The notes beneath the pieces were generated by a model. That model saw nothing but the letters and a program-made list of their open reading frames with translations. It ran no database searches and had not been told where the DNA came from. DNA of 64,000 nucleotides from Magallana gigas. Its lineage: Eukaryota. Both the position numbers and the translations under genes were made by a program. The DNA is taken from NCBI RefSeq assembly GCF_963853765.1, contig NC_088856.1:29636001-29700000 (forward strand), read 5' to 3'. Shown here piece after piece: positions 4,833-49,213 of this stretch (positions within the stretch are counted from its first letter, which is position 1; every line of letters begins with the position of its first letter).

Positions 4833-6488
4833 GTTCCATAATGCCTGCATTCTCTCAAAAACATGCTTTTGATCACCTCTTTAAAATGATTTGAAATGAC
4901 GTCAAATGCACATATGCATCAGCATTACTCCCCCCCCCCCTGATTTTATATCAGATATCAAGAGTTTATTTTTTTTTCTGCATAATAACTTTAAATCTTT
5001 AAAATCTAAAATCTATAATTACGTCATATTGGTTTTACCATCAACACTTTGGAATCCTTTACGAGATCTAATTTAAGGTCAAAGTCTAGTAAATGAAAAG
5101 TAGCTATAGCTTAGGAAACTCCAAATAAAAATGATAAATAAGAGGGCGATTAGAAATGAATTTTGTGAAGTTGATGTTAAACACTCGAAAAGTTCAGAAA
5201 GATCAACAAATAAAGATGACCTCATGCATTTGTTTTGAATAAATAAGAACAAAAAGGTTAAGTTAGAATCTTTGAATATATTGTGTATTGGAATCAAAGC
5301 AGACAACCACTATACCTTGTGTTCTATTTTTGTGCGTCAGGAAAAAAAATGGCGCCGTAGTTTGACATCATGACTGACAGAAATTTGAAATATCTGACTA
5401 TTAACGCTTTAATTCTTTTTTGTCAACAGATGATTGTTATCTTCCTTTATTTTCCTAAGAAGGATAAAATGTCACCAAATAAGTATTGTTCTATTAGTCA
5501 GAGTGATTTGGTTTTTTTTCCAGAGAGTCAGAATTTCAAAATAGATTGTTGTGTTATTTCTAATTAGTCAAAAGCGTTTGGGAGGAGAGGTATATTAACT
5601 AGGATATAAGGACATACTTGCATTTTAGTAATGTCTCAGACAATTATCATTTTTTTCTAAAAGTTTTATGACTACATTTTTCTGTTAAGTATTTCAGTTG
5701 GTTGATTTAAATAGTTTTCTATGCCCACAAATTGAAGGCAACTTAATGAAGAGATATTATATATAAGGATGATATATTGATTTTTTACTGTAAAGAAATT
5801 TAACGATCAATAAATAAGTTGACAAATAAGAATACATCGATACATGTACTATACTGTGAAATATTGTCGGCCTAAGATTATTATTTTTTATCCGCCAAAA
5901 CTGTTTTATATAGTGAAAATTATTATACTGGTTCAAATTTTAAAAAAATGATCAATGCGATTCGATTTAAGGTAAATCTTCGATTATCAATGTCATTTGG
6001 GTGATAATTTGTGAAGACATTTTGTTCCCAAAATCCATTTAATAAAAGAAATATTCAATATTAATCCCAGTAGATATGTATTTTTATCTAACATGTTATG
6101 TAAATTGTGATATTGTGATCACGTATCTTATTAAAAAAAATTAATCAGCATTTTAATACGAAACAAAGGTTTACCATATTAGTGTCTGTTTTAAAAATAC
6201 ACTCATGCTCTCCTAAATGTTCTCAATTTTTAAACTTTGCTTTGTCGCTCTCAGTCATAAAAACAAAACACAAATTTCCAAGAAAATATTTAATTGAACA
6301 AGTTTACATAAAAAGACAAAGACCGTCGATACTGAGTATGTGTCACGTAATGTTAGTCTCGCACAATGTGCCCGCACAATAAAAATCCCACGCATTCCTT
6401 TTGGTGTCTCTTGAATTCCAAAGAAGACATTAGTAGTTTTATAGTTCAATGAATATAATCAAAGCTATGTACAATGCTAATCTTTTCC

Positions 6489-9400
6489 TTAATTTTCAAG
6501 CTGTTCGTGACTTTGCATTTCTGCAAGAGGATGACGGGCTGAAAAAATAATAAAAATGATTTTATTGTGCCACTAATGATTTATCAGCTAAATGAATTAA
6601 AGTGCAATTGAAAAGCTAATTGACAAAGGAAGTTCTGCGTAGGTGTATGCTTTCACTTCAAAAGGCTTCTGTTTCTTGTATTCATAAGGGGCGGAAAAGA
6701 ACACGATTATATCAAATCCATAGAATACTATTGCTCCATAAATACAATGACAATCAATAATTAAAACTATCTTGATATAAGATTCGTATGTATAATCCTT
6801 GTATGCAGAAGGCTTATGAAATGTTCACCTAATTGGATATTGTTTATACTTACTACAGTCACATGTTGCCGGGCAGTACTCTTTGAGAATCAATTGGTCC
6901 TCGGACATGCAATCCTCTTGAGTGACCAACTCACAAAAGTCCCAATTTTCGTACATCTTTGGGTTCACACAGTCCTCTGAAGAACATAGAAAAACCCACC
7001 GATATGATAAGGAAAAATATTTAAATAACTTAATTATTTTGTAAAGGTTAGGTAGAAAAAAAATTGAGTGTCAACTTATCTTTCATCTGCATATTTGACA
7101 CCTTTTTGAGTTTTTGTATCTTAACCATGACAGGGCTAGATTTACCAATTATCTCCCCCCTTCTTTCTACATGAATTTTTCCCTTAAAAACATTTTATTC
7201 CTATAAGGCATTTCAAAGGAAATAACTGCCACAATGTTTCTTATAATATGTATTTAAATCATGTTTAATTCAGTAAATAGACTAAAAACTAATATCATAC
7301 AATTCCTAAGGCTTCTGTGTTGATATGAATCAGACATGCAAATACTTTAACTTGTAAAAAAACATATGATATTTTGTGTTATGCGCCAGGAACTAAATCA
7401 GAGAGAACAAGTGGATGACATCATGGAAAAAATGTTTTTTACGTGCAGAAAAGTGATAAAAATCTATGATTTAATTATTCCGTACAACACAGTGAAAGAA
7501 TATAAACAATAAAAATGAAATGAGACTGATTATAAAGGAGCTGTTATGAAACAAGGAATGCGATATTAGATTGCTGATTTATCACCAAGAACGCTGTGAA
7601 ACTTCAATAACAGGAAAGTTTTTAGAATGTCAATAGCTCTTCATTAGCCACGTGGGTTTTCTAAATACTGTCATTATAGATTCAGTACACCTAGGGCAAA
7701 CAAAAGAGGAATAAGATATAATCAACGTGTTAAATGCAGTTCTATTTATGTTTTAAAATACGGTGAATATTTTTTTCAGACGGAAAATAATTGTCAATGG
7801 GATTTTTTAATGTTGCAATTAGCATTCAAAAGTACAAAAGTCCTTCTTTTGTGAACTAAAATAACTGTAGATTCAACAAATGAATAAATGAACAATAACA
7901 ACCCCCTATAAGTCACGAAAAGATACTTCATGTCGAATTAGAAGACTCTTGTTGAGAAAAAAAACCCAATTAAATCGAAAACAATCAGAGATTCAGATAT
8001 CAGAAAGTGTTATAAAAAACATTGAAATGGAGATATACATTCAAAATCTTAATGTTCTATAGTGACAAAAAATATCATATCTCACCATCGCAATTTGGAC
8101 CTTTCCCATACAAACACTGGCAAGTGCAGGTTGTATTATCAAGGGCCCCTGTACCAATTCCGGGCTTCTCGCAAGTTTTTCTGCAGTCTAAATAAAAATT
8201 GTTTACTTTGTAAGCAAACATATTTCTTTGGGAAAGACTACATACACCTCATTTCCTGGTTGGCATATTCCGTAAAGCTATATAACGAGTAATACGTAAA
8301 TGCCTAGTCATATACATGTGCCTCTAAACCGATTGTTTTCAAAACATGAAAGTAACACAATGTATAAGTTAATAAAAGAAAAGCAATGTAGAGCTTTTAT
8401 TTTTGGTGTCAACTGAATTAATATTTCTAATGATACCCTTAATCTTGAGTAATCAGTAAATGTATAATTTTTGTTTCATTTTATTCAAGATCTCCTATAC
8501 CGATGTTTCCTTTGATCAGCTGAGTAGCAATCGATCCATCGTCATCTTTGTGCGGAAGCAATGCCTTGTCAACATCGGTGAATTGTACGCAATGAATGTA
8601 TATCACAATACAGTATAGTTATATCGACCCGTGCTTGGTAACGAATGTAAGTACATGTAATAGTGTGTTTCTTTCGAAGAATGATTCACAGAAATAGTTA
8701 ATTGTCACATTAGCACATCGCTTCTATAAAAAATTCTATTGGCTGAAGATCTTTTCAGGAGATATATCGTTTGGTAATTTTTCTATTATTTTTTTTAAAT
8801 TCATTGAAGTTTAAAACTAACAGAATTTTATAGGAAATCTTAGTTTAAATAAAAACTGAAATAATGTCGAAAAACACGTAAAGCTGGACACAAAATGAAA
8901 AAGATAATCAATTTTTTTCTACAGAAAGTTTATGTAATCAATTTTTTTTTTCTGCTGCTTTCTGTTTAGAGAAAATATTCCCAAACTAAAACTACATAGT
9001 TATGAATGGTCTCCAAATGTTGACTGTTAACAAATGAATTCCTTACAATTTAGCAGTTGATAAATTACAGTATGTTCAGTACCGATCAGACCAAACTTAG
9101 CAGAAAGTAACCCCCCCCCCCCCAAAAAAAAAATTTTGGATAGTCTAGGACTTTCTCTGGGTTTACTAGAATGGACCCAGAGTAAACCCCGATCAGAAGT
9201 AAACCCGTGAAGGAAGACACTACATGTGTATTTGGATTGTTCAAGGAACAGGAGTTACAGGCAGTAGGATAGTTAGATAAAAGATGGAACTGGTTAAAGT
9301 GCAAAAGTGGACCCCAAATGAAAACCCCAAATAAACACAAAGTAACCCCGAGTGGACCCAAAGAAACCCTGATTAGACACAATTTTTTTTAAAAAATCTT

Positions 9401-12400
9401 ACCCTGAGTTTACCCCAAGAAAACACTTAAAGTAACACCCGAGATTTAGTGCGGGTCAACTCTGGTGTTAGGTTGGGTCTGATCGGAACTGTATAACGAA
9501 AAATCTTAATGAAAAATTGTGTCTCCTTGATGTAGCTTCATTTCAAAAATTTCTGGAACAGCAGGTCTAAATTTTGTATTTAGATCTTGTGATGTGCTTG
9601 ATAATGGAGGCGGTGAAAACCACTGAAACATTACGGATACTCAACATTAAATAAGCAAAATAAATTTACCACAGTTGGCAGGATTTTCTTCATTGCACGA
9701 ATCTGTAAAAAATCAAACAAATTCATTTTACATTACCGTTGACAATAAACCCATATACCACAAATGAATCAAACCAAAGGCGTTTGACTTCTTATCACCA
9801 GAATAATTGCCTTGTGACGTTTAATGTATAAAGCACTGCACAAAAACATTGTATCCCTTTATTACAATGAAACCAATTTCAAGCAGAATTCATTTAAATT
9901 GAAAACCATCGTCGGCATTAAAGGATTGACTTTATTTCTTGTAAGAGTACTCTTGTAATGCAAAGGTTTGTATTTTTCCCTTGTTTACAAATTGTTGCAG
10001 ATGCTAATTTCATAGAGATCAATTGGATCAGTTCCAGGAGTAAAAACAGCAACAGTTAAAATATGTCACTTATATTAAAACCTAACCCCCCCCCCCAAAA
10101 AAAAAAAATAAATAAAAAAAATCAATAAAATAATTGATTCTCTGTCCCTATTTAAGTTCTGGGGTTTATAATCGAGATTTTCATTAGTTTCTTAATTAAA
10201 GAAGCATACTCTGACAATATTAAATCATTATTTTTAATTTCATTTTAAGATGCGATCTTGATCATTGTAACTAGCAGGATTTGAGTAAAATTTTATATTT
10301 CAGGCTGTCAAATTGGACGAGCGCGTGTTGCAATTATGCAGGGCTGTTTTTCCTTGGAGTTAATTTTCTGAATGCAATTGTAGTAAAAACAACTTTTCAA
10401 AAATGCACGAAAAAGATAATATGGATCGATAAATATTTGTTATGAATTGTTTTAAATTATATTGAAGTTCTTTTAAATGATAGGCACATGATGTTGTTTT
10501 AAGGAAAATTAACTATAAAACCGTTATCCTAACAAATTGGCAGACAAGGTTTAGTAACAATCAACAGTTTTCAGTCGCTGCGAGGAGTTCCATAAGAAGT
10601 TTGATATGTTCAAGAGTAGCTGCAAAGGTAGAGTACGCTTTTGAACCACCTTTATCATCAGCTGCAAATCGATAAACGTAAATAGAAACACAAATCAGAT
10701 TAAACAATAACTCATTAATTTTGGGATGAAATATNNNNNNNNNNNNNNNNNNNNNNNNNNNNNNNNNNNNNNNNNNNNNNNNNNNNNNNNNNNNNNNNNN
10801 NNNNNNNNNNNNNNNNNNNNNNNNNNNNNNNNNNNNNNNNNNNNNNNNNNNNNNNNNNNNNNNNNNNNNNNNNNNNNNNNNNNNNNNNNNNNNNNNNNNN
10901 NNNNNNNNNNATTGGAACAGCAATAAAAAGGAGTGTAGGTTTTATAATAACTGAACCCTTTCTGCACCGTTTCGTTAATTCTTCGCAACACTATACTCTT
11001 TATCCAAGTTCTTGAATTTCAATAACGCCTTCGACATAACTGTTTCTCAAAGGTTCCATAATCGTCGAAATATATGTGATTATCTGTCTGCATCTGCAGG
11101 GTGTATTTCTTTTTGTGATTCAAGCGAAGTCTGAAAAATTTGTCTAAAGGATTACAATCCTATATTCATCTAAAATATAATATGGTTGCTGACAAGAAGA
11201 TTGGAGTTTTTTTTATTCCATTTTCTCTATGTCTTTTATAGTGCACTGAATTATATGGACAACAATGTAACCATTATTTGATGTGCCATCCTACGAGTTT
11301 ATAAAGCTTACAATATTAAACCAATGAATCACATTGCAAAAACTATGTTTAATCGAAATAAATATTCCCTATCTCATAATTGTGCTTTGGTGCACTCTAT
11401 TATTTTAGGAACCTCTGCAGTTAAAGGATTTATGGTCTTGACTATGAGAGAGAGCAATATTATTTTTTAAACCTTCACCCTTTATGAACGGAATGTGTCA
11501 ATTCTTTGCCATAAAATATTCATAAAATTCGAAAATGTATATAAATGAACAACTTTTTCTTTGTTTTATTGATTTCATAAAGTTTTACGATAAAACAAAC
11601 ATATTTCTTAATTTGTTCACAGACAAATAAAATCAATGGAAAAGTATTGTTCATGTAAATTTGTATTTTTTTTTAATAACAAAAATGTGTTTAATAATAT
11701 TTTATCGCAAAGATTGTTAGATATGTTCAAATTAAACCAAACACATTTTCACTTTTGAAAAATATAAAATGAGTCAAATATATGATAAGTTGTGGTATAT
11801 TACATTCTGAAAGGTATGCTTTATTCTGGTTTATTTTGATTGTTCATATGGGTACTTAATCACATAACACTTCTAACATGTATTTTTCTTTCTCTTCAGA
11901 ACACATGACTGTACATAAAGAAAATTGTTTAAATACTAACAAAATTTTAAAAAATCGACTTTAAACAAAGATACAAATTAAATATCTTAAAATGAAATCT
12001 TAATGAAATCCATTTGCTAAATCTACCTTTGCATATTGATACAAACACATGAATTAACAACTGATATCAAATCTTAATATAAATTTAACAACTGTACCAA
12101 TATAATACAACGATTTATTAAATTAACATTTACATGTAATTGTTGTAGACCTGAAGCATGCTAACACTCTACATATTTTTCTCACAACTTTTTCATGTGC
12201 ATCCCGGTTGATGCCTTTTTCAAAAAGGAGGTTCGTTAAACGTAAACCCAAACTGTACAAATTTCTGGAATAAAAAATTCCGAAATAATTTAAAAACTTT
12301 GCTTCAATAAAAAATAGATTTATTTATTTTTTGATTAATAGATCTTATTATGAATAAATGTAAAATCATTTAAGACTTAAATTTAGAACAATTTGAAGAG

Positions 12401-15400
12401 GCATGATATCTTTGTCCATTCTTATTCTGAAATGAAAACGCCTGCCATGTAATTTAACACCAACATGTGCAGGCACGTAGCATCGTTTTTGAAAGTGGGG
12501 GGGCCAGACTCATCCAAAAAATCTTGACAAGCAAAAAAAAAAAAAAAAGGAAGAGGGGGGGGGGGGGGCTGGCATAGTATATAACTTCAATTTCACTCCT
12601 CATTTCCTTATTTTCATATCAATTTTTTACATACTCCCAAAAAAGTGGGGGGGCCAACTCTATGATAATTCAATTTTTTATATGTAAATTTTAAAAAATT
12701 TGTTGCTGCGAGAAAAAGTGGGGGGGGGGGGGGGGCCAGGCCCCCCCTGGCCCCCCCTGATGCTACGTGCCTGATGTGTATTGCAAATACCTTAACACAA
12801 GGAGTTCAAATATTTAACATTGAATTACAGCTTAGTGCAACATGCCCTGTCGTGTCAATGTTAACATTTTTTGTGTTGTGCAGGCCAAGTAAAATTTGAT
12901 TTCGTCACACATAATGCTGGATATTGTTTCCAAATAAAAAATGATAATAAATAAAGACAATGTCTGTCCCAAAAAGACAGTAAAAGATTAATCTTCCTTG
13001 TTTGGAATGTCGGCTGCAAGTCAACCCATCCTCAGTTTGCCATCTACATATGTATTTCTATTTTTGCCAAACAGTATTGAATCTTTTATTTAATATTCAA
13101 TGCAATATGTAACAAAGTATATATGTTACGTGTATAGTTTTTAGTATTTAAATAAGACCAAACGAGTACAAATAGATTCGTGTTTAATCAAAAAGTTGTC
13201 TGCTAGAACGTCTAATTTTGTTATTGATTAGTTTTTACACGGTGATATAAAATACGATTCTCAGTGCGAGGAACCTTAACTCTAACAGTTTCCATTCAGC
13301 TGGAAGATAATGTGCATTTAACAATTAATAATTTTAAAACCATATAGACGTATTAAAAAACAAAGCCAACACCTGTCATTATGTGGTCAATTTAAACGTT
13401 TATGCCGTTTCAAAATCATGTGTCATTTTTATTCACACTGTGTTCCTTTAATCTTAATGGTTCGTGGTAAATGAGTGATGTTTATTCAATAGCGCAAGAA
13501 TATTGAAATGAAAAAAAAAACTTTTTTCAAACTATGCAATGCATTATATGTTTAAACTTTATTTCTATACGTATGATGAAAGGAGAATGAGTCGTATGTG
13601 CCCATAATGGCCAAGTAAACACAATAACATGTTTTCAAACCCTAATTTTTATCGACAGGCGAATTTTGATTTGAGAAAAAATAAAATGTATTCAAATTGC
13701 AAACGGTTTTAAAATTACTATGAAAATAGATATGCTTGTGATTTAAAGTAAATAGAAATATATATTTTACGTCATAATGTTCCTGCACCTAAAGCAAACT
13801 TATTATTTTTTCCTTTATCTTTATCTAAAATTTGAATAAATCATCGTAATGTAATTAATTAATAATTATTCATGCAGTTTGAAAGTACTAGAGTTTGCAT
13901 AAATAACATTTCTTTCAGAATATGCGTTAAAATATTACGCTTATTTGGAATTACTCCACCAGAAACGTCGCACAAAATGATTTCAAATAAAAACAAGCTG
14001 TAATATTTTAGGTTCGGGACTTAAAGAAAGTTCAAGAACCCAAAGGAATTATTTAACATATAAAGATAAGAAATGATGTTCATAGTGTAAGTTTTTATAA
14101 GATTCAAAAGTGATACGACAGTTTGTGTTTAAAAAATAATCAAATTCACCCAGGAAGTTCAAATTTTTGTGTAACAAGAAGAAAATATCCAGTATAACGT
14201 ACATGATTAAATTATAACTAAACGGACGTATATGGTATTGTTTAAAATTAGGAATTTTCCTTGAGGCTCAATTATTTTGAAAAATACACAACATTATTGA
14301 TTATTTTATTGAGCCATAGTTTTCATTAACTCGGTTTTTCCGACATGACTTTTGATTTTATTTATAACAAATATATACAAACCCAATGGAAGTGAATGAA
14401 TTAACACCGTTTTTATAACAAGCCAGTTACTAATAAGGCCTTGGCATTATTGACATAAATAGGTCGCTATATATGTATAAATGCTTTTAACAGTTAAGAA
14501 CTAACTTTATTAATGAATATTTTTGAAGATTATGACCTTTATATTGAAGAATGTGGATTAACATTTTAGAAATCTAACGGTGATAGTTAGAACAGGCATG
14601 TTCAATGTCAAAATTTGCATTCAGTTCGACATTTTCTTGACATTAAAGGTCATTAGAGATGCAAGAGAATCCTACATGTTAACATATCGTTTCTGCAATT
14701 GAAAATTCACAAAGCTAAGGTATAATTATTTGCATACAAAAACTTTTTTTGGGGAAAACTTGTAAGAACATACGAACTAAGTCTCTTTTACATGATCAAG
14801 TTCAGTTGTAGTGAAAAAGAAAATATTCAAGGGACATGTTTTAAAATGGGACAAACCAGGTGAGTGTTTATTGATTAGCATTAGTAATTTACGTAAGACT
14901 ATTAATACACGAGATGATTAAAGTCCTATAGTATCGTAAAAGTTGAAATCAGAACAAAAATCAGAAAATTCAGTCAATTATTTTCCAGAAGTTGTCTTTC
15001 TTTCAATAAGCTTTGAGAGTTGGTGATTAAACCTTAAACGTTATCAAATCAATATTGCAATTTAATATTTTGAATATCATACATAACAAACATGTATGTA
15101 AATATAAGTATAAAGATACCAATAAATATAACTTACCACACAGGCCGTCATTGCAAAATGGAGTTTCGTCTTCGCATTGTGTGCAGACCGGGCCTTTGCT
15201 AAAAAGCCTTTGTTTTTCATGACTGTAATATTGGAATTAAAAAAGATTGTCATGAAGACCACAACGAAGTTATTTTGAATAAAGAAAATAATTCATCAAA
15301 TAAAAATGCATACTTTCCCTCATATATGCACATAAAAACATCGTATCTAGATTGACTCTCGCCGCAATTCCTTTTAAATGCACATCCTATTCTTCGTAAT

Positions 15401-18400
15401 TGTGCATTTATTATCTACAAACATAATATTTATATGGATAAAATCTCGCACATATTATTATATAATTTGCAATACCTAATAAGTGAATGAATTTCAAATT
15501 TTGTTATTATTCACTTACCGTGAGAAAGTTTTTGCAGGCCTGAAAATCAAGACACATTTCAAATTCTGGAATGAAATTTTGTCCTTCCCTCAACCAATGT
15601 CCAATGACTTTTGTTATGTTACCATTAAAAGTTAATCCAACATTTGTTTGTTTAACTGATAAATGATGCAAATTTTCATCAAAAGTTTGTCTGCATGAGA
15701 CTTTTTCTTTTGCCTCAAGGCTTAAAATGTTGTCCCAAACCTGAAAAAGAAAACGAACATTTATATAATTTTACAAAAGTAAAAAGTTGACGGGATATGG
15801 CGAAGATTGTTTACAAATTAAAAGACATAAATTCATTGTCACAATGTGCATTAATTACTTACTAATAGCTTCATATTTGCAATTTCATTCTGTAAACCCC
15901 GTTTTGCATAGTGTCTTCTAAATGAATTGTGTACTCGTAAAATCTTTTGTATTTCCTCTTGCTGGATGCAAATAACATTTTGTAACAATACTGCTGAAAG
16001 AACTGAAAAGTATAAAAACAACAATTCTAATGAACTCGGAAAATTAAACGAAATTAGTATTAATCTTCAATTTAAAGTTTAAAAATTGTTAATATATCTT
16101 GTACTTTTTTCCATTTTTTAGATAGGTTATACGAATGGGAGAAAAAAATATCTAAATTTGCTTTAAAACTAAATTGTAATCGACAAATATTTTCCTGAAG
16201 GAGTGTTTTTCAAAGCATGATGGAAATATAGGTTATTTGGTGCAGAGAAATGATCGATTAACACAATTAAAAAAAACCAGGGTAATTGGGGCCACACATA
16301 TGAAAGTAAAGGATGTTGATCTTCTTTTCTCGTCCTGTTTCCGCATGTTGTCGTTAGCTACGACAAAGGCAAATCCTGCTTTAGATTATATTGATGCATT
16401 GATTAGTGAGATATACTATTTGAATAGGTGGATGTGGGTAGTTAAGTGTCAAATAATTATCTATATTTTATCTACTGAATGACACTTGATTTTTAGGTTC
16501 GGTAAAAGTAGTTGACATGATGAATTTTTTTTTTGCAATACCTGTACTAAACGACGTACGAGTTTTCGTTAGCAGTATAAATACTATTTGAATAAATAAA
16601 CGCTAATCAACAACGTTATTAATCTTGAAATATTTTTTTTTCTTTCTTAAGGGTTTATCATTGGTTTTTTTTTTCGAAAACTATGAATATTTTTTTTGAA
16701 ATAACAAATAGGATCGATGGATTTAAAAAAAAACAACATTACCCTTAAATGTTCTTATTAACAGTAATCAAATTTTTCCAAGTGCTTAAGGCAACTATAT
16801 ATACATATGAAAACACCAAGCAGCACCCAACGTCGGTTGAGACACTTGTTAAATACGCAATGTTAAGTGTTAACGGGGAAATAATTACACATTAGATCTA
16901 TAAAAAAATGTCATTTGATGAAACAATATTAATGGTCTAAGATCCACAATCTAGTTTGAAAATTAAAAAAGTGTATAATCAATTGTAAGGGTACACTTAT
17001 TAAAAAAAACTGATAAACTATTTAAAACAAACGAGGGAATTTCAAAATAAAAGAATCAAAAATTTAAAACTGTCTCATTTTCAAAAAATAATTAATTATA
17101 ATTGAGCATCCGACTTTATTTACATGACAATTTGTGTATTTCACATACATCTGAACATTGATCTGTTTACAAGCCGATGGATGGTTTAAGCTAAATTCAC
17201 ACATCCGCGGTATTTGGTGTTAATGTCTTTAATAAGGCCTTTTGTAGGATTTCGCAATGGCAAAAAAAGTAGGATAATTGGGATATATATGTTATTGACG
17301 TTTATTTGCATCATCTAATGACTTTCAAATAAAGCCAATACCATGTTTCACGTACATGAGTGCCTAACAAACCTTCATAATTCATATTATTAGAATGTTT
17401 TGCAAAATAACATATATATGTTTGTTACGAACTATGCAACAACTAGGCGACTGTAAACACGAGTAAGAAAATTAACTTTGTTGTAATAATAACGATGCGA
17501 ATTTTCCGTAAATAAAAACCAAAAAATAAAAAAATAAAAATAAAAATACCCGAACAATGTAGTCTGTAAATAAAGCAACAACAACAAAATTCAAGTTATA
17601 AGACATTATCTTGTTCTTTTATCAAGTGTTATCGCAGACTTTTGTAATAGTTATATAGTAACTCTCAAGTCAGTCTTAAGCATTGAAATCATGGATGTAA
17701 TGCATTTAAATTACTATCCATACATAATTTATATTTCTCCCAATTTTATAGTTAAAATGAACGTATTGAAATTCAAATTTAGGTCAACAAACGTCATGTG
17801 CAGAGTATGAAATTAATTTTTCCATTATGACATTTTATATCGTAAAAACCAAACATCCCAAACTGAACAGCTTGTATATATATTTTCCTCGTATAAATAG
17901 ACACTAGTATACAGTATTTAGTTTATCAAACAATCTTACTAATTATAAAGAGTGTACAAACTAAATGAAAAGTTCTGATCTTTAATGAATGCAAAGCATT
18001 AAATTTCTTTTTTCTGACTCTAAAATTTGTTAAATTGCATGAAAATAAAATTATCTAATGAAAATTAATAGTATAACTTTTTGTTTCTATTGATTTAATG
18101 TAAAATATGCAGGAATCGAAAGAAAGGGCATTGAAGAAAAGGCGTTTACCTTAACATGTTAAGCCTAAATGATTACCGTTAAAATATATATTTAAAAGAA
18201 AATTGAAAAAAATAAATATTGATGTTTCTTCATTGTTTTATAGTAAATGCCATTCGCTCAAGTGAGAAAAAATACGATCCATAAATTGCGTTCACATTTT
18301 ATACGAATATAATAGACATGTCCCCGAAGCAATCTATCTTATTTAAATAGTTATGTAGACGTTACCAAGCAGGTATTGCAGTAATCAATTTAACAATTAT

Positions 18401-18498
18401 TCTCTTTACAATTAATTGTTTAAGAGCTAAGACATCTGAAGTTATTAACCTCAACCGTGTTATAACTGAACAAATTAAAACTCACCTATTCGTAACAT
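6489..18498 (-). CDS. Secreted CAP/SCP-domain (CRISP/GLIPR1-like) cysteine-rich protein: signal peptide + CAP + hinge + EGF-like + ShK/ICR-like module, 278 aa, 8 coding exons
   Basis: Model complement(join(6489..6538,6854..6976,8086..8187,15137..15222,15314..15414,15519..15740,15863..16002,18486..18498)) = 837 nt. All introns GT-AG, phases compatible, no internal stop. Protein: MLRIVLSAVLLQNVICIQQEEIQKILRVHNSFRRHYAKRGLQNEIANMKLLVWDNILSLEAKEKVSCRQTFDENLHHLSVKQTNVGLTFNGNITKVIGHWLREGQNFIPEFEMCLDFQACKNFLTIINAQLRRIGCAFKRNCGESQSRYDVFMCIYEGNHEKQRLFSKGPVCTQCEDETPFCNDGLCDCRKTCEKPGIGTGALDNTTCTCQCLYGKGPNCDEDCVNPKMYENWDFCELVTQEDCMSEDQLILKEYCPATCDCTRHPLAEMQSHEQLEN*. CAP hallmarks: HNxxR, ANMxxLxWDxxL, WxxE, IGCA..C, MCxY, and the G-x-x-C-x2-C...C-NDGLC hinge. 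The last exon (6489..6538) is the least certain. Confidence 0.85.
9077..9491. mobile_element. Degenerate MITE with CAGT...ACTG termini (Tc1/mariner-like ends), in CAP intron 5
   Basis: CAGTACCGATCAGACCAAACTTAG vs reverse complement of the right end CAGTTCCGATCAGACCCAACCTAA; TA on the right flank. Internal AGTAA(A)CCCC repeats. A related fragment lies at 33860-33957. Confidence 0.5.
10735..10910. other. Assembly gap (N176)
   Basis: N run. Confidence 1.
12470..12773. mobile_element. 304-bp MITE with perfect 15-bp TIR and 5-bp TSD (hAT5-like signature)
   Basis: TIR CAGGCACGTAGCATC/GATGCTACGTGCCTG; flanking direct repeat ATGTG at 12465-12469 and 12774-12778; internal poly-G tracts. Confidence 0.85.
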
Positions 18499-18529
18499 TT
18501 CCTACAACTAGACCTTTATTCACCGTAAG

Positions 18530-24189: not shown

Positions 24190-27100
24190 ATGTCACTTTT
24201 TCTTTTTCTGTTTTGTTTTCGTGCAAGGCTTTAAGTGTCATTTTACATTAACCTTTCTTTTTAACAGCGTCAACAGCTCGAAGAAAAATAGCAATAATTG
24301 CCTTTGCGACACTACAAGAATCGTGCCTTAACGTTACAATCATGATGAAGAAACCTAATGTTACATAATACAGAGTCGCCATATATCTGTTTATATTCAT
24401 GCCCGCTACCCATTCATTGACGTGCTCTCTCATGCAGTTTTCCGTGTTAATAAAAGAATATATAAAATGCGTTGTATTATACAACAAATTGAAACTTTTA
24501 AAAGGAAGCCTAAAGGTTATTTTGTACCTTTCTTGTAACTGGCAAATTTTATTTCTCGTGTATGTCACGTTTTCTGGTTGTTGAACATGAAATGCATGTT
24601 CAATATTGCGAAAGAATGAACAATCAAACACACTTTCCATTAATATATGTTTTTATAAGCGTCGAATTTAAGGATTATAAGTAATTTATTATAATTAAAA
24701 AATTAGATGAAAATGTTCAAAGGTAATGATAAATGTATTTTAAGGGTCCAATCCATTTTTAATCTTTCATCAACAGAAATATTTCTTTTTTTTATCTGTG
24801 GATTAGAATTGAATAAGCCAGTTGGTTTTTAAAAACTACTAAGATTGGTACTTCGCTTAATTTTGTGAATCATTCTTATTAAGAATGAATTTTTATTCGT
24901 TTTAATTCGTGATTTCTGACATAAAAGTAAAATCTGGTTTACAAAGGATACCTTTGGGACAAAAATTATTGAAAATATGCATATGTTGTTACTTCTGAAC
25001 CATCAGATTCCTTAGTTCTGCACATCAAAACCAAAACATTCATGCTTACAAATAAACTAAATTCGCAAGACATTAGTTTCGTCAATTTATCTTAAACTGT
25101 TAGCTGCGGAACTGTATCTTCACGGGGAATTTTAGTTGACGGACCGTGAAGACACTCTTCCGTCAATACAAAAAATCAGTATATTTATTGCGCAAAAAAA
25201 AAAAATATTTAACTGATTTAGGAATACATTCGGTGAACATTTTAAAACGAAAACATTCCTGAGACATTTTACTACTGGTTCATTGGTTTACATGCCTCAA
25301 ATATTTTCCTAAACACTTTAACACTAACCCGTGGAGCTACATTGATGCGGCTCATGTACGTGTATTTGATAGTACACAGTCGATAATTCTTATTTTATAA
25401 TTTTGCAACTAACTTGGTATACGATGAAATTCTAACGATACTCTTAGATATAATTGGTATGTAATATCATATTTTTTCGCCAGTTAGACTATCATTGTTG
25501 TGAAACAAGACGGTCAGAATATCATATGACCTCAGTGCATAATATTCTGAATATCTGAGTAAGTATAACATAACCACTAGTATATACCCATCTAAAGGTT
25601 TTTATGTATGTGAATTTTACCCTTGAATTTCCCATGATTTAACAGTCTCTGATATATATCAACCATTTGGGTTGCATTATTTAATGTATTTCATGAGAAT
25701 TATAAAAAAAAAACCCAACTTAAATCCAATTAAATCATATTTGATTAAAAAAATTCAATAATACAAATGGAAGGAGTTATAGAACTTATATTGAAAATTC
25801 GCATTATATTGGCGCCTACTTACAATTGACACTATTTTCTCATACATGTACAGCCTACAGTTATATTCATATTTGTTCGGCGATTAGATTATTAAGCTAA
25901 AATCTAACTTACATTTTTACTAGAGACAAGATAGATAATGAAACGGCCAATTAAGATTATGTGTAGTAAGCAAACTAACTGCTTGCAAGCCTAATACTAT
26001 GTCTGTTGCTCTAAATAATGACTTCTATAAAATTGCCCTTAAGTATGATTTTTGTAATATATATGTATGAATATCTACCAATGCCATTAACTATTTGTTA
26101 TACAATATAATTTTTAATATATTTTTTTCACATACAAGTTTTACTAATTGATAAGTTTTTTAAAGTAGTTACTTTTCGTTATAAAACACATATTCTTTTA
26201 AACACTGAAATAAGATTTAATCCTTCCACCTTTTTGGGTTTTTTTTAAATATATGTAAAAGAAACAAAAACTTACCGAATAATTCTTTCATGATCATATT
26301 ATTCGCGTAAACCTCCAGTGTTTTTGTATAAAAATGTGATGCTTTTCTTCATACTACAAGACGTCCTAGTCTATTATAGGAGAGAGACAATCCGGGTGGG
26401 AGTTTCTCTGTCGTGAACTTCAATGACTGATGCCAGCGTGAATAGGGTTTAGATATATTTATCGATAAGTTTATATCATATTCTATTTTCTGGATAGCAT
26501 ACAAAACATTAAGGAGATCCAGGTATACTGCATGCATCAACTTCGTGTACACCAAACCCACTGACATTAAACATTTTTTATTTTTTTATTTCATTGCATT
26601 GAAATAAAAAATGAAATTGTTTTAAGTTACACAAAGAAAAAAATAGTTAAAAAATTATTTAAAATCCATCAGTAAATTCACTTAAAACTGTTTTATATAT
26701 TTTTATGATATGCGGAATGACTCTTATTTGAATAACTGAGATAAACAAAAATTGCGTGTATATAATCCCTTTTCTCTCAGATTTGTATAGTAACACATAA
26801 ATAACTTAATCAGGCACAAATCACATTTTACTCCATTTATGATACCCTGACTTGTACTTTTGTTATAAATTTTACCATACCAAACTTACGACCTAGTATA
26901 TACCGTTTAAACGATTGTGTCTTGTAAGTACGATCTACTATCTTACATAAATGACTTAATACCTAGCAGCTTGTTCTACTTACAATCAAAGGACTTGTAT
27001 ATTGTGTCGTAAATAAAACAAAGCTAATGTTACTTGTACATCTTTTTCTCATAATAAAATTTTACTACTTTGACCGATTGATTAATTAACTCGTTCTGCC

Positions 27101-32040: not shown

Positions 32041-32174
32041 NNNNNNNNNNNNNNNNNNNNNNNNNNNNNNNNNNNNNNNNNNNNNNNNNNNNNNNNNNNN
32101 NNNNNNNNNNNNNNNNNNNNNNNNNNNNNNNNNNNNNNNNNNNNNNNNNNNNNNNNNNNNNNNNNNNNNNNNNN
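32041..32174. other. Assembly gap (N134)
   Basis: N run. Confidence 1.
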
Positions 32175-34394
32175 AGGAGACAATTGAAACTGGTTACAAC
32201 GTGATTAAGCGTTGTATTTTTATACGTATAAACACAATCTGATATCTTTTCCAGCACAGGTATGTAAAACTCTAAAATAAACAGACCATAATTGCATCAA
32301 TTTTTACATACCACCATTACATAATTCGTAAACGAGCAATGAAATTTCTGAAATATCTGCTTTATCCATCCCTACATATACCTCGTAAATATCATTTAAT
32401 TATCTCAGTATTGCAGAGTAAGCTATTTTATGTGTTGAAAGAAATCAATGAAATAGCGTACAAATACATTTCAGAGAGCACCCAGAGTAGTTTGCGTTAT
32501 TTACAGAGGAAGCATGCATCATCCGGGTAACTTCGATCTTACCTTTGGTTGGAATGTTAAAATGATCATCTTTATTTTTAAAAGATAAAAATAGGGGGAA
32601 ATGAATGCTAAGCTGCCAGACATAAAGGATATGTGACATATCTAAAACTGATGAATTGTTTAAACGTGCAGAGACAGAAATACGGTTTTTGTAAAATCAT
32701 CAGCTTAAAAGGAAGGTTTGACAAGCCAATATTTCGCATTTAAGCTCTCGAATAGATGGCCTTGAATATAATTTGTAATAAATAACATGATTTGGTATTT
32801 CTCATTTGATATCCATGTAGTTGATTTATTTTAATTTGGTTTTGTCAACTGTAGTGTAAATGGCATAGTTTATATTTAATTGTAATCTTGCTTTGGTTTT
32901 TGGTTTATTTTTTATTGGAAAGCAGAGCAAGTGCATTGGCTTAAAGTATAGACCACATTCGGATTTGTACGCGCTGCACTCAATTTGTTTGCACGACCTG
33001 GTGTGGTATAGGACTGACGGTATCCAAAAATAAGCATTCAATGCCTAAATGTGCGAATGTTTTTGACATAATTATTATTTGCGTCATCGAGCAATATCAC
33101 AGCTTATTTCTGTGTTTTCCCTAGGTCGACTATAAAGTTATCACCTTTGTCTGCTCCGCATACGTCATATATATTAGATTTCATGAATTAGGACTATCTG
33201 TCAATAGTAAATGATATACGTTTAACGAACCAATAAATCCCATTATAATATGGTACAGAGAATACCATGACAATACATGTGTTCAATATATGTATGAGGT
33301 TTGAATACCATTTCGACATCATATGGTCTGTTGTTCACATAACACAATTTGGCCATGCGCCATGACCTCAGATTTTGAATATTCCGGGATAAGCGGAATT
33401 AAATTTAGTATATTGATTTAAAGTTCATTAGAATTATTGCAAAGGTATCTCTAACTTTGGTGATTATTTGGCACTAAGTACAACAGCAATGACAGAAATC
33501 TTCGTTGTGTTTTTTTTTAATTTACCCATGCATTAAAGAATCAGAGGCAATAATTATCAAGGTCGGTGTATTATAAGTTTTAAAACTAGCTTCAGAGTTT
33601 TAAATGAATCAACGGGTAATGAGATCATTTTCAACTGTTTCTTCAGTCAGAATTATATAGATAACTGACAATTAATTAAAGTACTATACTGTCTAATACT
33701 GTAATACTGAATACCGTACTTTAGTGTAGTTAAAACAATTGAATACTATAATAGTCACGTTTTAGACAGAACCAAGAACCACAGTTTTGCTATTTCATTA
33801 GCCTTGTCAGTCTTATAGAATGGTTTCCGAAAAGCATTATTCGAACGATATCATTTTTTCAGACCGAGAGTAAACCCCACGTACACCGCAAAAGTTAACT
33901 CGAAGTTAACATGTAGTTGGGGTCCGTTCTGGTGTTAGGTTGGGTCCGGTTGGTACCTTCAAGTTTTTTCCAATCAAAATGTCTGACATCGTGTAGAGAA
34001 GATTGTAAAGTTATTTCACATCAACACAAAGTAAATGTAAGTCACTAGATTGTTTTATTGCTTAGTTTTAGTAAAATAATGTCATCTAATTTGTTTTACA
34101 TGTAATTTCGTATGTTAATAAAAGAAATGTGTTGTACATCCCACCTATAATAAAAACAATCATAATGGTAAAATATGAAGTATTGTTTTCATTTTTTACG
34201 TACATGGTACATTATACAGATTCTAAAATATTTATACCATCACCATGCTGAAAACTGACATGAACTGTGTTAAATAGCTAGGGCTTTAATTGCTTTTTTG
34301 TCTCTTTCATTTTTTTTAGTAAAACAGAGGAGACGATGAATAATTAGATTATTTTTCAGAAAGACAATTCTTCGCCTGATGATCGTCTGATTTG

Positions 34395-39035: not shown

Positions 39036-39185
39036 NNNNNNNNNNNNNNNNNNNNNNNNNNNNNNNNNNNNNNNNNNNNNNNNNNNNNNNNNNNNNNNNN
39101 NNNNNNNNNNNNNNNNNNNNNNNNNNNNNNNNNNNNNNNNNNNNNNNNNNNNNNNNNNNNNNNNNNNNNNNNNNNNNNNNNNNNN
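39036..39185. other. Assembly gap (N150)
   Basis: N run. Confidence 1.
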
Positions 39186-48996: not shown

Positions 48997-49213
48997 NNNN
49001 NNNNNNNNNNNNNNNNNNNNNNNNNNNNNNNNNNNNNNNNNNNNNNNNNNNNNNNNNNNNNNNNNNNNNNNNNNNNNNNNNNNNNNNNNNNNNNNNNNNN
49101 NNNNNNNNNNNNNNNNNNNNNNNNNNNNNNNNNNNNNNNNNNNNNNNNNNNNNNNNNNNNNNNNNNNNNNNNNNNNNNNNNNNNNNNNNNNNNNNNNNNN
49201 NNNNNNNNNNNNN
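48997..49213. other. Assembly gap (N217) between the duplicated SULT units
   Basis: N run. Confidence 1.

Follow-up and report, generated by a model that had tools for sequence, protein, structure and literature searches.

Molluscan CAP-ShK type II proteins form a clade in which a CAP domain is combined with EGF-like and poorly recognisable ShKT motifs; the clade is reported to occur in non-predatory gastropods and bivalves, and Mr30 and Tex31 belong to it (Gerdol et al. 2019, PMC6409789). The gene described here is encoded on the minus strand of the window, the whole 64,000-nt stretch of Magallana gigas DNA that was analysed. Judged from its sequence, the oyster protein appears to fit the type II group by architecture and taxon range, since in each case a signal peptide and a CAP domain precede a Cys-rich tail with EGF-like and ShKT-like motifs. 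Conus Mr30 (289 aa) matches oyster residues 19–272 structurally, with 25% identity. The oyster tail is single and fixed, consisting of a hinge, a two-Cys loop, an EGF-like module and an ICR-like module, whereas multiplied arrays are found in Cumia. Furthermore, a venom context is absent in oysters. To our knowledge, no member of this CAP protein type has been studied outside venomous snails. The biological gain from the present locus is small, since the gene is annotated and the family architecture has already been described.

The vertebrate CRISPs (natrin, stecrisp, triflin and CRISP1–3) share with the oyster protein a six-Cys CAP domain, a four-Cys hinge (C-x2-C ... (D/N)-G-L-C) and a terminal six-Cys ICR ending C-P-A-x-C-x-C. 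Their Foldseek alignments (E about 1e-9) extend to residue 274, with an identity of only 16–23%. The oyster protein contains 24 Cys compared with 16 in the vertebrate CRISPs, and the extra eight derive from the micro-exon loop and the EGF-like exon. The CRISP-like spacing of 6 + 4 + 6 Cys is kept, with the eight additional Cys (residues 191–232) placed between the hinge and the ICR. The oyster protein thus resembles a CRISP carrying an insert rather than a canonical member of the subfamily, in which the ICR directly follows the hinge. The vertebrate CLEC18A/B/C proteins (CAP-EGF-EGF-C-type lectin) likewise carry an EGF-type module directly after the CAP domain and match oyster residues 19–237 (CAP, hinge and EGF-like) structurally at 23–24% identity; several orthologues of the oyster protein bear the RefSeq name 'CLEC18A-like'. 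In contrast to CLEC18A/B/C, which are about 450 aa long, the oyster protein has about 290 aa, ends in an ICR/ShK-like module and has no C-type lectin domain. For the CAP core, the best structural match is GLIPR1 (E 3e-10, TM 0.73 by target), and the insect antigen-5 Ves v 5 matches by sequence (E 0.0044). Both are CAP-only proteins without the Cys-rich tail of the oyster protein.

Gene structure, transcripts and annotation

The gene spans approximately 20 kb (26410 to about 6281) and comprises nine coding exons (Table 1). Two alternative first exons or promoters differ solely in the first 4–7 signal-peptide residues that they supply. The products are 289, 290 and 292 aa long, and 24 Cys follow the signal peptide.

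Table 1. Features of the CAP gene, in positions of the window
Feature	Position	Strand	Description
Exon 1a	26276..26410	-	Alternative first exon: 5'UTR and 16 coding nt; ATG at 26291 (MKELF), in-frame ATG at 26297 (MIMKELF); donor G/gtaagt, phase 1
Exon 1b	18486..18529	-	Alternative first exon: short 5'UTR and 13 coding nt (ATG 18498, MLRI); donor G/gtgagt, phase 1; TATA-like runs immediately upstream
Exon 2	15863..16002	-	140 nt; remaining signal peptide, predicted cleavage VIC/IQ; CAP motifs HNSFRR, NMKLLVW; cDNA blocks match borders
Exon 3	15519..15740	-	222 nt; mid CAP domain (WDN..., GHWLRE, C..C); cDNA blocks
Exon 4	15314..15414	-	101 nt; CAP domain end (IGCAF ... MCIYEG); cDNA blocks
Exon 5	15137..15222	-	86 nt; CRISP-type hinge C-x2-C-x6-C-NDGL-C; phase 1 end; cDNA blocks
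Assembly gap	10735..10910	.	176 N, within intron between exon 5 and micro-exon; non-coding
Micro-exon	9670..9702	-	33 nt, phase 1 to phase 1; encodes DSCNEENPANC
EGF-like exon (exon 6 of the preliminary description)	8086..8187	-	102 nt; six-Cys DCRKTC...TCTCQC...GPNCD; cDNA blocks
Exon 7 of the preliminary description	6854..6976	-	123 nt; six-Cys ShK/ICR-like C-x11-C-x7-C-x11-C-x3-C-x-C, ending CPATCDC; cDNA blocks
Last exon	6281..6538	-	47 coding nt (TRHPLAEMQSHEQLEN), TAA 6491-6489, ~208 nt 3'UTR

A preliminary description of this DNA had proposed eight minus-strand exons of 13–222 nt with canonical splice sites. All eight are real, and their borders agree exactly with the cDNA. When rebuilt, the exons measure 13, 140, 222, 101, 86, 102, 123 and 50 nt, and their join has GT-AG borders throughout and gives 837 nt, namely 278 aa plus TAA, with 23 Cys, 22 of which follow residue 16 as claimed; every motif and Cys spacing quoted is present. 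The cDNA confirmed six of the seven proposed junctions (18486/16002, 15863/15740, 15519/15414, 15314/15222, 8086/6976 and 6854/6538). The seventh, 15137/8187, skips the micro-exon at 9702–9670 and was not found in the cDNA contigs, nor was the 278-aa product observed. The model was thus incomplete: it missed the 33-nt micro-exon with its two Cys and the upstream first exon 26410–26276, and its 278-aa product with 22 Cys is replaced in the transcripts by products of 289, 290 or 292 aa with 24 Cys. This outcome indicates that an animal gene of many exons can be recovered in full from raw sequence, even down to a first exon with 13 coding nt, while micro-exons and alternative first exons are blind spots of such a reading.

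The transcript data consist of Logan cDNA contigs from independent public runs (L006–L013, eight samples, and L005). These nine contigs map onto the window as nine blocks whose ends fall exactly on the exon borders, at 97–100% identity. Two runs of other studies, together with raw polyA reads, also show the joints 6538/6854, 6976/8086 and 8187/9670. First mates of the raw reads lie on the plus strand only, which fits minus-strand RNA, as most stranded libraries would give. The consensus of the loose ends beyond 9703 (runs X1 and X7) equals the reverse-complemented 3' end of exon 5. Of the words of window positions 15100–16050, the share contained in 14 probable RNA runs (one on record as RNA) from seven studies was 0.46–0.47, matching the computed exonic 31-mer share (429/921). 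The CAP gene is real and transcribed.

Both first exons are represented among the transcripts. Positions 1–135 of contig L005 correspond to 26410–26276, with the next block starting from 16002, and exon 1a was found once by a back-translated pattern; it fits the 290/292-aa database proteins P0013, P0025 (A0A8W8LXJ1) and P0027. Contigs L006, L008, L009 and L012 begin at 18529–18520 and join 18486 to 16002. Exon 1b accordingly fits the 289-aa isoform X2 (XP_011437026.1, P0026) and P0030. The 13-nt first exon at 18498 was suspected to be wrong when the first cDNA was found to use 26291, but this suspicion was rejected, since isoform X2 (MLRI...) and eight contigs use 18498, and the exon is genuine. 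At the 3' end, an ATTAAA lies at 6294–6289 in the last exon, and the longest cDNA contig stops at 6281.

An early candidate location for the 11 missing residues was the N gap; it was rejected once the micro-exon had been located among the readable letters. The cDNAs run from 15137 directly to 9702 without extra letters, and the readable exons cover all 290 residues; therefore, the gap contains no coding sequence and leaves the frame unaffected.

The window product is 100% identical to the M. gigas UniProt entry A0A8W8LXJ1 (P0025), whose cluster also includes XP_011437024.1 and XP_011437026.1. The locus is very probably the already annotated secreted CAP-superfamily gene of Magallana (Crassostrea) gigas represented by these three entries. 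The gene is already known, being present in RefSeq and UniProt, so that its description as 'hidden' holds only with respect to a prokaryote-style ORF track. No paper naming this gene turned up in literature searches that used accessions, SRR numbers or the old name 'VAR11'. The fragment K1QY93 carries the automatic UniProt name 'ShKT domain-containing protein'.

CAP domain and Cys-rich tail

The protein is arranged as a signal peptide, a CAP/PR-1 domain (6 Cys), a CRISP-type hinge (4 Cys), a two-Cys loop, an EGF-like module (6 Cys), a ShK/ICR-like module (6 Cys) and a short acidic tail. The signal-peptide cleavage site was judged by eye. Two N-x-S/T sites are present, and the 24 Cys after the signal peptide would allow 12 disulfides. 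Database searches were performed with the database proteins P0013 and P0025 in place of the spliced 278-aa model. Pfam PF00188 matches full-length P0013 with 36.3 bits (cut-off 21.1, E 1.1e-8), spanning residues 27–157 and profile positions 1–117 of 117. The same threshold is exceeded by eight of the nine further family members tested. Translations of single exons gave no significant CAP match in Pfam or the PDB, and exon 4 alone matches only the profile end (positions 90–117 of 117, E 0.059). This difference between the single exons and the full-length protein indicates that the domain becomes recognisable only once spliced. When all six frames of the genome were scanned with Pfam CAP, the 50 best pieces did not include this locus.

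The AF2 model has a pLDDT of about 85–90 across the CAP part. Foldseek against the PDB returned 54 matches at E <= 0.001; each of the 50 that were listed is a CAP protein. GLIPR1 is followed by natrin, stecrisp, triflin and Ves v 5 (about 1e-9), and the listed matches include the lipid-binding CAP proteins tablysin-15 and Pry1. Matches among Swiss-Prot models include GLIPR1L1, CLEC18A–C, snake CRISPs and Conus Mr30. The proposal of a divergent mollusc CAP member was borne out, as the protein has a modelled fold matching GLIPR1, natrin and stecrisp, has Mr30 among its Swiss-Prot matches and has orthologues only in bivalves and gastropods. The H30-N31-x-x-R34 motif is invariant in the family. 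In one pairwise alignment, the His of the Ves v 5 GHYTQ motif aligns with Asn in the oyster protein, and this position varies among N, R and H in the family alignment. The GHYTQ-type motif, which is not a defining feature of CAP membership, is thus kept in part, and the Asn suggests that the canonical metal site may be incomplete.

The tail modules are less readily assigned. Of the CAP-hinge-EGF-ShK architecture proposed in the preliminary description, the CAP domain, the motifs and the Cys layout stood, whereas the EGF-like and ShK modules fall below the Pfam thresholds. The best Pfam match of the EGF-like exon is EGF_C8A_B_C6 (15.2 bits, E 0.021, cut-off 27). Exon 7 matches Pfam ShK (PF01549) with 17.4 bits against a cut-off of 20.9 (E 0.0068, profile 2–35 of 37) and Pfam Crisp (PF08562) with 14.7 bits against a cut-off of 27 (E 0.049); with the full protein or tail pieces, Pfam Crisp gave no match. 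Only one of 14 family tails reaches E <= 1 against Pfam ShK, and a family/tail profile found no match among PDB sequences. The EGF-like and ShK-like labels are plausible at sub-threshold scores. AlphaFold confidence is below 50 for residues about 200–245 of the full-length model, so that any fold or disulfide pairing of the tail is tentative. A tail-only AlphaFold model was poor (pLDDT 51.6), with Foldseek rows almost all to EGF domains at E >= 3, and was dropped as a verdict on the fold.

Conservation and possible role

Orthologues were found in bivalves and gastropods only, with 67–78% identity in three other oysters and 30–48% in scallops, mussels, Solemya and two gastropods. Invariance extends to all 18 Cys of the C-terminal part in molluscs ranging from protobranch bivalves to heterobranch gastropods and, in 14 mollusc proteins, to CDCRK and GPNCD; the C(T/R)RHP tail is kept in scallop and oyster orthologues. 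A region-restricted homologue search and an ESM Atlas search of the tail yielded nothing further. Within the genome, exon 3 has a single further copy, in a paralogue on chromosome 3 with 36% identity. This paralogue shares all eight intron positions and phases with the present gene, including the micro-exon, whose counterpart measures 30 nt. The tail architecture is retained in oysters as two ancient paralogues. With the 74-aa exon as query, phmmer returned five matches only among 1.84 billion representatives, from which P0002 and P0005 were set aside as unrelated low-complexity or repeat proteins and P0001 and P0004 as ORF-caller read-throughs of genomic exons.

On the basis of family knowledge, the oyster CAP protein would be exported and would act as an extracellular binding protein rather than as an enzyme. 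By analogy with CRISPs, the CAP domain may provide a docking or lipid-binding scaffold, while the invariant C-terminal Cys modules could engage a receptor, an ion channel or another target on a surface. Tentatively, the fixed tail might define a mollusc-wide extracellular ligand with a specific receptor or channel target, tuned by a skippable micro-exon and the two promoters. Candidate contexts for such a ligand would be gamete recognition, larval settlement or immunity, and the protein would then be no toxin but what Mr30 and the venom CRISPs correspond to in normal physiology.

Alternatively, the function might be driven mainly by the CAP domain, with the protein binding sterols, lipids or small ligands, or acting in defence like PR-1, Pry1 and tablysin, and with the tail serving only for structural spacing or oligomerisation, not as a head that binds a channel or receptor. 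Significance is reached by the CAP domain alone, which is also the best-folded part, and the structural matches to tablysin-15 and Pry1 point in the same direction. However, the tail is the more conserved part (mean column identity of 59%, compared with 49% for the whole protein), besides its invariant Cys and motifs. This conservation argues for a specific interaction surface, and we regard the CAP-driven alternative as rather doubtful.

The micro-exon and the integrity of the locus

The micro-exon was located by a translated scan in which 10 of 11 residues matched the database protein P0013, and its borders read ttttacag/AT...TGTG/gtaaat. It contributes two invariant Cys, placed after the hinge and before the EGF-like module, and every transcript seen contains it. 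All five contigs aligned to the window (L005, L006, L008, L009 and L012) contain it, and the joint 8187/9670 is present in runs X1, X7 and X21. The junction of the preliminary description would correspond to a minor 278/279-aa isoform in which exon 5 is spliced to the EGF-like exon, leaving out one two-Cys loop. Such skipping would keep the frame, since the 33-nt exon both begins and ends in phase 1, and would remove exactly two Cys; moreover, the Pecten maximus RefSeq 'isoform X2' (P0008) lacks precisely this segment. Nevertheless, the segment is kept in 15 of 15 listed cluster members (lengths 289, 290, 292, 268 and 102), none of the five aligned cDNA contigs lacks it, and the listed loose ends at 8187 in four runs show no partner except 9670, in a comparison of low power because contigs drop rare variants, raw depth is 1–3 and the exons lie 7.1 kb apart. 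A skipping isoform in M. gigas therefore appears unlikely.

An extremely improbable reading is that of a copy in decay or without function, whose transcripts are noise. The Asn at the GHYTQ His position and the single-exon pieces without a CAP match might point to it; against it stand an intact 290-codon frame, correctly spliced polyA transcripts across many runs and studies, and orthologues that keep every Cys across oyster genera. Elsewhere in the window, a weak CAP-like match at 33862–33770 contains a stop (E 0.1) and was taken as chance.

Exon structure and transcripts

The preliminary reading of the gene was correct and careful, and its architecture is essentially right; it overlooked a micro-exon and an alternative first exon. 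When rebuilt from the window, its eight segments join into 837 nt (278 aa plus TAA; 23 Cys, 22 of them beyond residue 16), with AG/GT borders and polypyrimidine tracts at all segments. The product contains every CAP motif quoted (HNSFR, NMKLLVWD, WLRE, IGCA, and MCIY), as well as CTQCEDETPFCNDGLC and both six-Cys spacings. Polyadenylated, spliced transcripts of the gene exist. The 1139-nt Logan cDNA contig L005 matches the window in nine blocks (97-100% identity), and all eight described exons appear in the cDNA alignments. However, the proposed direct joint between 15137 and 8187, in exons 7.1 kb apart, was seen neither in these alignments nor in the runs placed on 6250-9800. Instead, a micro-exon encoding DSCNEENPANC intervenes, which is kept in every transcript and every listed database protein covering the region.

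The 13-nt first coding exon (MLRI...) is genuine and agrees with isoform X2, XP_011437026.1. This 289-aa form is encoded by eight contigs from other samples, and four aligned contigs start at 18529-18520, join 18486 to 16002, and then follow the exon chain of L005. The described extent of 6489-18498 holds for the exons within it, but a second first exon lies outside. An in-frame ATG two codons upstream of its MKELF start yields the 292 aa of XP_011437024.1 (MIMKELF...). The two first exons have a phase-1 end in common and alter the protein at the beginning of the signal peptide only.

Features of the CAP gene, its product and its paralogue, with assembly gaps of the window
Feature	Position	Strand	Details
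Second first exon	26410-26276	minus	L005 block 1; MKELF..., 290 aa
First coding exon, MLRI... form	18498-18486	minus	preliminary segment 1
Exon	16002-15863	minus	L005 block 2; preliminary segment 2
Exon	15740-15519	minus	L005 block 3; preliminary segment 3
Exon	15414-15314	minus	L005 block 4; preliminary segment 4
Exon	15222-15137	minus	L005 block 5; preliminary segment 5
Micro-exon	9702-9670	minus	L005 block 6; 33 nt, ttttacag/AT TCG TGC ... TGT G/gtaaat, phase 1 to phase 1
Exon	8187-8086	minus	L005 block 7; preliminary segment 6
Exon	6976-6854	minus	L005 block 8; preliminary segment 7
Last exon	6538-6342	minus	range is that of L005 block 9; preliminary segment 8 is 6538-6489
3'UTR of last exon		minus	~208 nt; ATTAAA at 6294-6289; longest contig stops at 6281
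Assembly gap (N run)	10735-10910		in long intron after exon ending at 15137
Assembly gaps outside gene	32041-32174, 39036-39185, 48997-49213		
Hinge	C173-C188		C173-x2-C-x6-C-x4-C188
Micro-exon loop	C191-C199		C191-x7-C199
EGF-like module (putative)	C201-C232		C201-x3-C-x14-C-x-C-x-C-x7-C232
Terminal module	C236-C274		C236-x11-C-x7-C-x11-C-x3-C-x-C274
Paralogue	G000:C3:8535544-8542456	minus	loci L003 and L004; other chromosome; 294 aa

Splicing is also evident in sequencing runs. In a word search over 15100-16050, 14 probable RNA runs (one recorded as RNA) from seven studies contained 0.46-0.47 of the words, while DNA runs contained 0.92-0.98. Since 429 of the 921 31-mers (0.47) lie wholly within the four exons of this interval, the RNA share is the value that spliced mRNA would give. 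Four runs were placed on 6250-9800: two sets of contigs from other studies and two of raw polyA reads. The joints 6538/6854, 6976/8086, and 8187/9670 were observed, each flanked by CT..AC on the plus strand, and the loose end past 9703, once reverse-complemented, gives the end of the exon finishing at 15137. The raw first mates lie on the plus strand only; in most stranded libraries, minus-strand RNA places first mates on the plus strand. The gene is visible in one raw polyA run and was not seen in the other.

The contigs run from 15137 into the next exon without added letters, and the readable exons account for all residues of the transcript-derived protein. Thus, the frame is carried by splicing, and none of the coding sequence of the isoforms seen lies in the intronic gap.

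Within the micro-exon, codon 190 (9698-9700) reads TCG, for Ser, in the window; the RefSeq and UniProt proteins and sequencing runs X1 and X7 agree. The Logan cDNA products of the SRR244891xx series, P0013 (from L005) and P0030 (a 289-aa form), have Leu instead, which looks like a natural polymorphism.

CAP domain and cysteine-rich tail

The full-length protein passes the Pfam CAP threshold (36.3 bits vs 21.1, E 1.1e-8), with residues 27-157 covering the entire profile, consistent with the CAP assignment of the preliminary reading. Among solved structures, Ves v 5 (E 0.0044) and an Ostertagia ASP were matched by sequence. An AlphaFold model built with 14 family sequences has a pLDDT of ~85-90 in the CAP part and is weak at residues ~200-245. 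Foldseek matched this model to GLIPR1 (3e-10) and to natrin, stecrisp, triflin, pseudechetoxin, and Ves v 5 (~1e-9); Swiss-Prot model matches include GLIPR1L1, CLEC18A-C, snake CRISPs, and Conus Mr30. The CLEC18A-C alignment extends through residue 237, and thus through the EGF-like module, and that of snake CRISPs through 274. H30 (HNxxR) and E104 (WxxE) do not vary in the family. The classical CAP cavity comprises two His and two Glu. In one pairwise alignment, the His of the Ves v 5 GHYTQ motif corresponds to Asn in the oyster protein, and the family has N, R, or H at this position; the cavity may therefore be incomplete.

The CAP domain contains six Cys and is followed by the tail. Among 14 aligned proteins from oysters, scallops, mussels, Solemya, Gigantopelta, and Biomphalaria, all 18 tail Cys, CDCRK, and GPNCD are invariant, and mean column identity is 59% in the tail vs 49% for the protein as a whole. 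Single exon pieces scored below the Pfam thresholds for ShK (17.4 bits), Crisp (14.7), and EGF_C8A_B_C6 (15.2). Whole tails gave no Pfam match except one ShK at E 0.015, and a tail profile found no match among the sequences of solved structures. The tail-only AlphaFold model is poor (pLDDT 51.6), and its Foldseek matches are nearly all EGF domains at E >= 3. Because of the sub-threshold scores and the poor model, the EGF-like and ShK/ICR-like labels for these putative modules are reasonable, not demonstrated. By eye, the hinge and the terminal CPATCDC appear to resemble CRISPs.

Annotation, paralogue, and proposed role

The gene and its family were already known, and the gene had been annotated beforehand. 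A phmmer search with the product of the 222-nt exon led to a 300-aa scallop protein of like layout, and thence to the family including P0013. The conceptual product of the window is 100% identical to UniProt A0A8W8LXJ1 of Magallana gigas, an 'SCP domain-containing protein'. Its 90% cluster includes XP_011437024.1 and XP_011437026.1, whose earlier name 'cysteine-rich venom protein VAR11 isoform X1/X2' has been replaced by 'uncharacterized protein'. Also in it are a Crassostrea angulata protein and an old fragment, K1QY93 ('ShKT domain-containing protein'). These matches make the Pacific oyster the most likely source of the genome. RefSeq names of orthologues (CLEC18A-like, GLIPR1-like, venom allergen 5-like, CRISP2-like, and scoloptoxin-like) show that automatic annotation recognises the family, not the function. 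Our literature search found no mention of the oyster gene. Three database entries, P0001, P0004, and P0024 (183 aa, 188 members, window 7070-6600), come from prokaryote-style ORF calling, in which single family exons on genomic contigs are read through into introns; they are artefacts, not isoforms.

In the 564-Mb genome, the paralogue is the sole other locus matching the central CAP exon or the C-terminal profile. Its nine coding exons (46/131/210/86/86/30/102/135/59 nt) share all eight intron positions and phases at a protein identity of merely 35-50%, which independently supports the exon structure of the gene. Its 30-nt micro-exon encodes VACDPSTEKC, and its terminal module ends in C-x3-C-x2-C, canonical for ShK. 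In a maximum-likelihood tree, whose backbone lacks resolution, the window protein clusters with those of Crassostrea virginica, Saccostrea cucullata, and Ostrea edulis (support 95/100). The paralogue clusters with the 'CRISP2-like' protein of Saccostrea echinata (100/100), to which it is orthologous on this phylogenetic placement. A weak likeness to the HNxxR part at 33770-33862 (minus; 39% over 31 aa, E 0.1) includes a stop codon and was judged to be chance rather than a second CAP gene.

The N-terminus is hydrophobic (MLRIVLSAVLLQNVIC or MKELFVLSAVLLQNVIC), with small residues at -3 and -1. The remainder contains 24 Cys and the N-x-S/T sites N93 and N217, and the mature protein is acidic, at ~31 kDa. 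From the sequence, we infer a secreted protein held by at most 12 disulfides. A binding rather than a catalytic role would be expected. On the established analogy with CRISPs, also summarised in PMC6409789, docking or lipid binding would fall to the CAP domain, and contact with a surface protein, for instance an ion channel, to the conserved tail. Gerdol et al. 2019 (PMC6409789) describe two ancient molluscan CAP-ShK clades. Of these, type II combines a CAP domain with EGF-like and poorly recognisable ShKT motifs, is known from bivalves and non-predatory gastropods, and includes Mr30 and Tex31; the oyster gene fits this description and is a candidate member. Unlike vertebrate CRISPs, the oyster protein has an additional eight-Cys insert between the hinge and ICR and falls below the Pfam Crisp threshold; it shares the CAP-EGF arrangement with CLEC18 but has no lectin domain.

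Other intronic features

Between the micro-exon and the EGF-like exon, the intron harbors a repeat at 9103-9500 with inverted arms (~9155-9190 and ~9460-9495). All four RNA runs cover this repeat very deeply on both strands and show 'opposite strands' joints and numerous loose ends there; it resembles a dispersed foldback or MITE-like element of which many copies are transcribed. At 12400-12800 on the minus strand, two neighbouring stretches translate as poly-Pro or poly-Gly (PPPPP, GGARGG) in several frames, probably reflecting low-complexity or repetitive sequence within the large intron.
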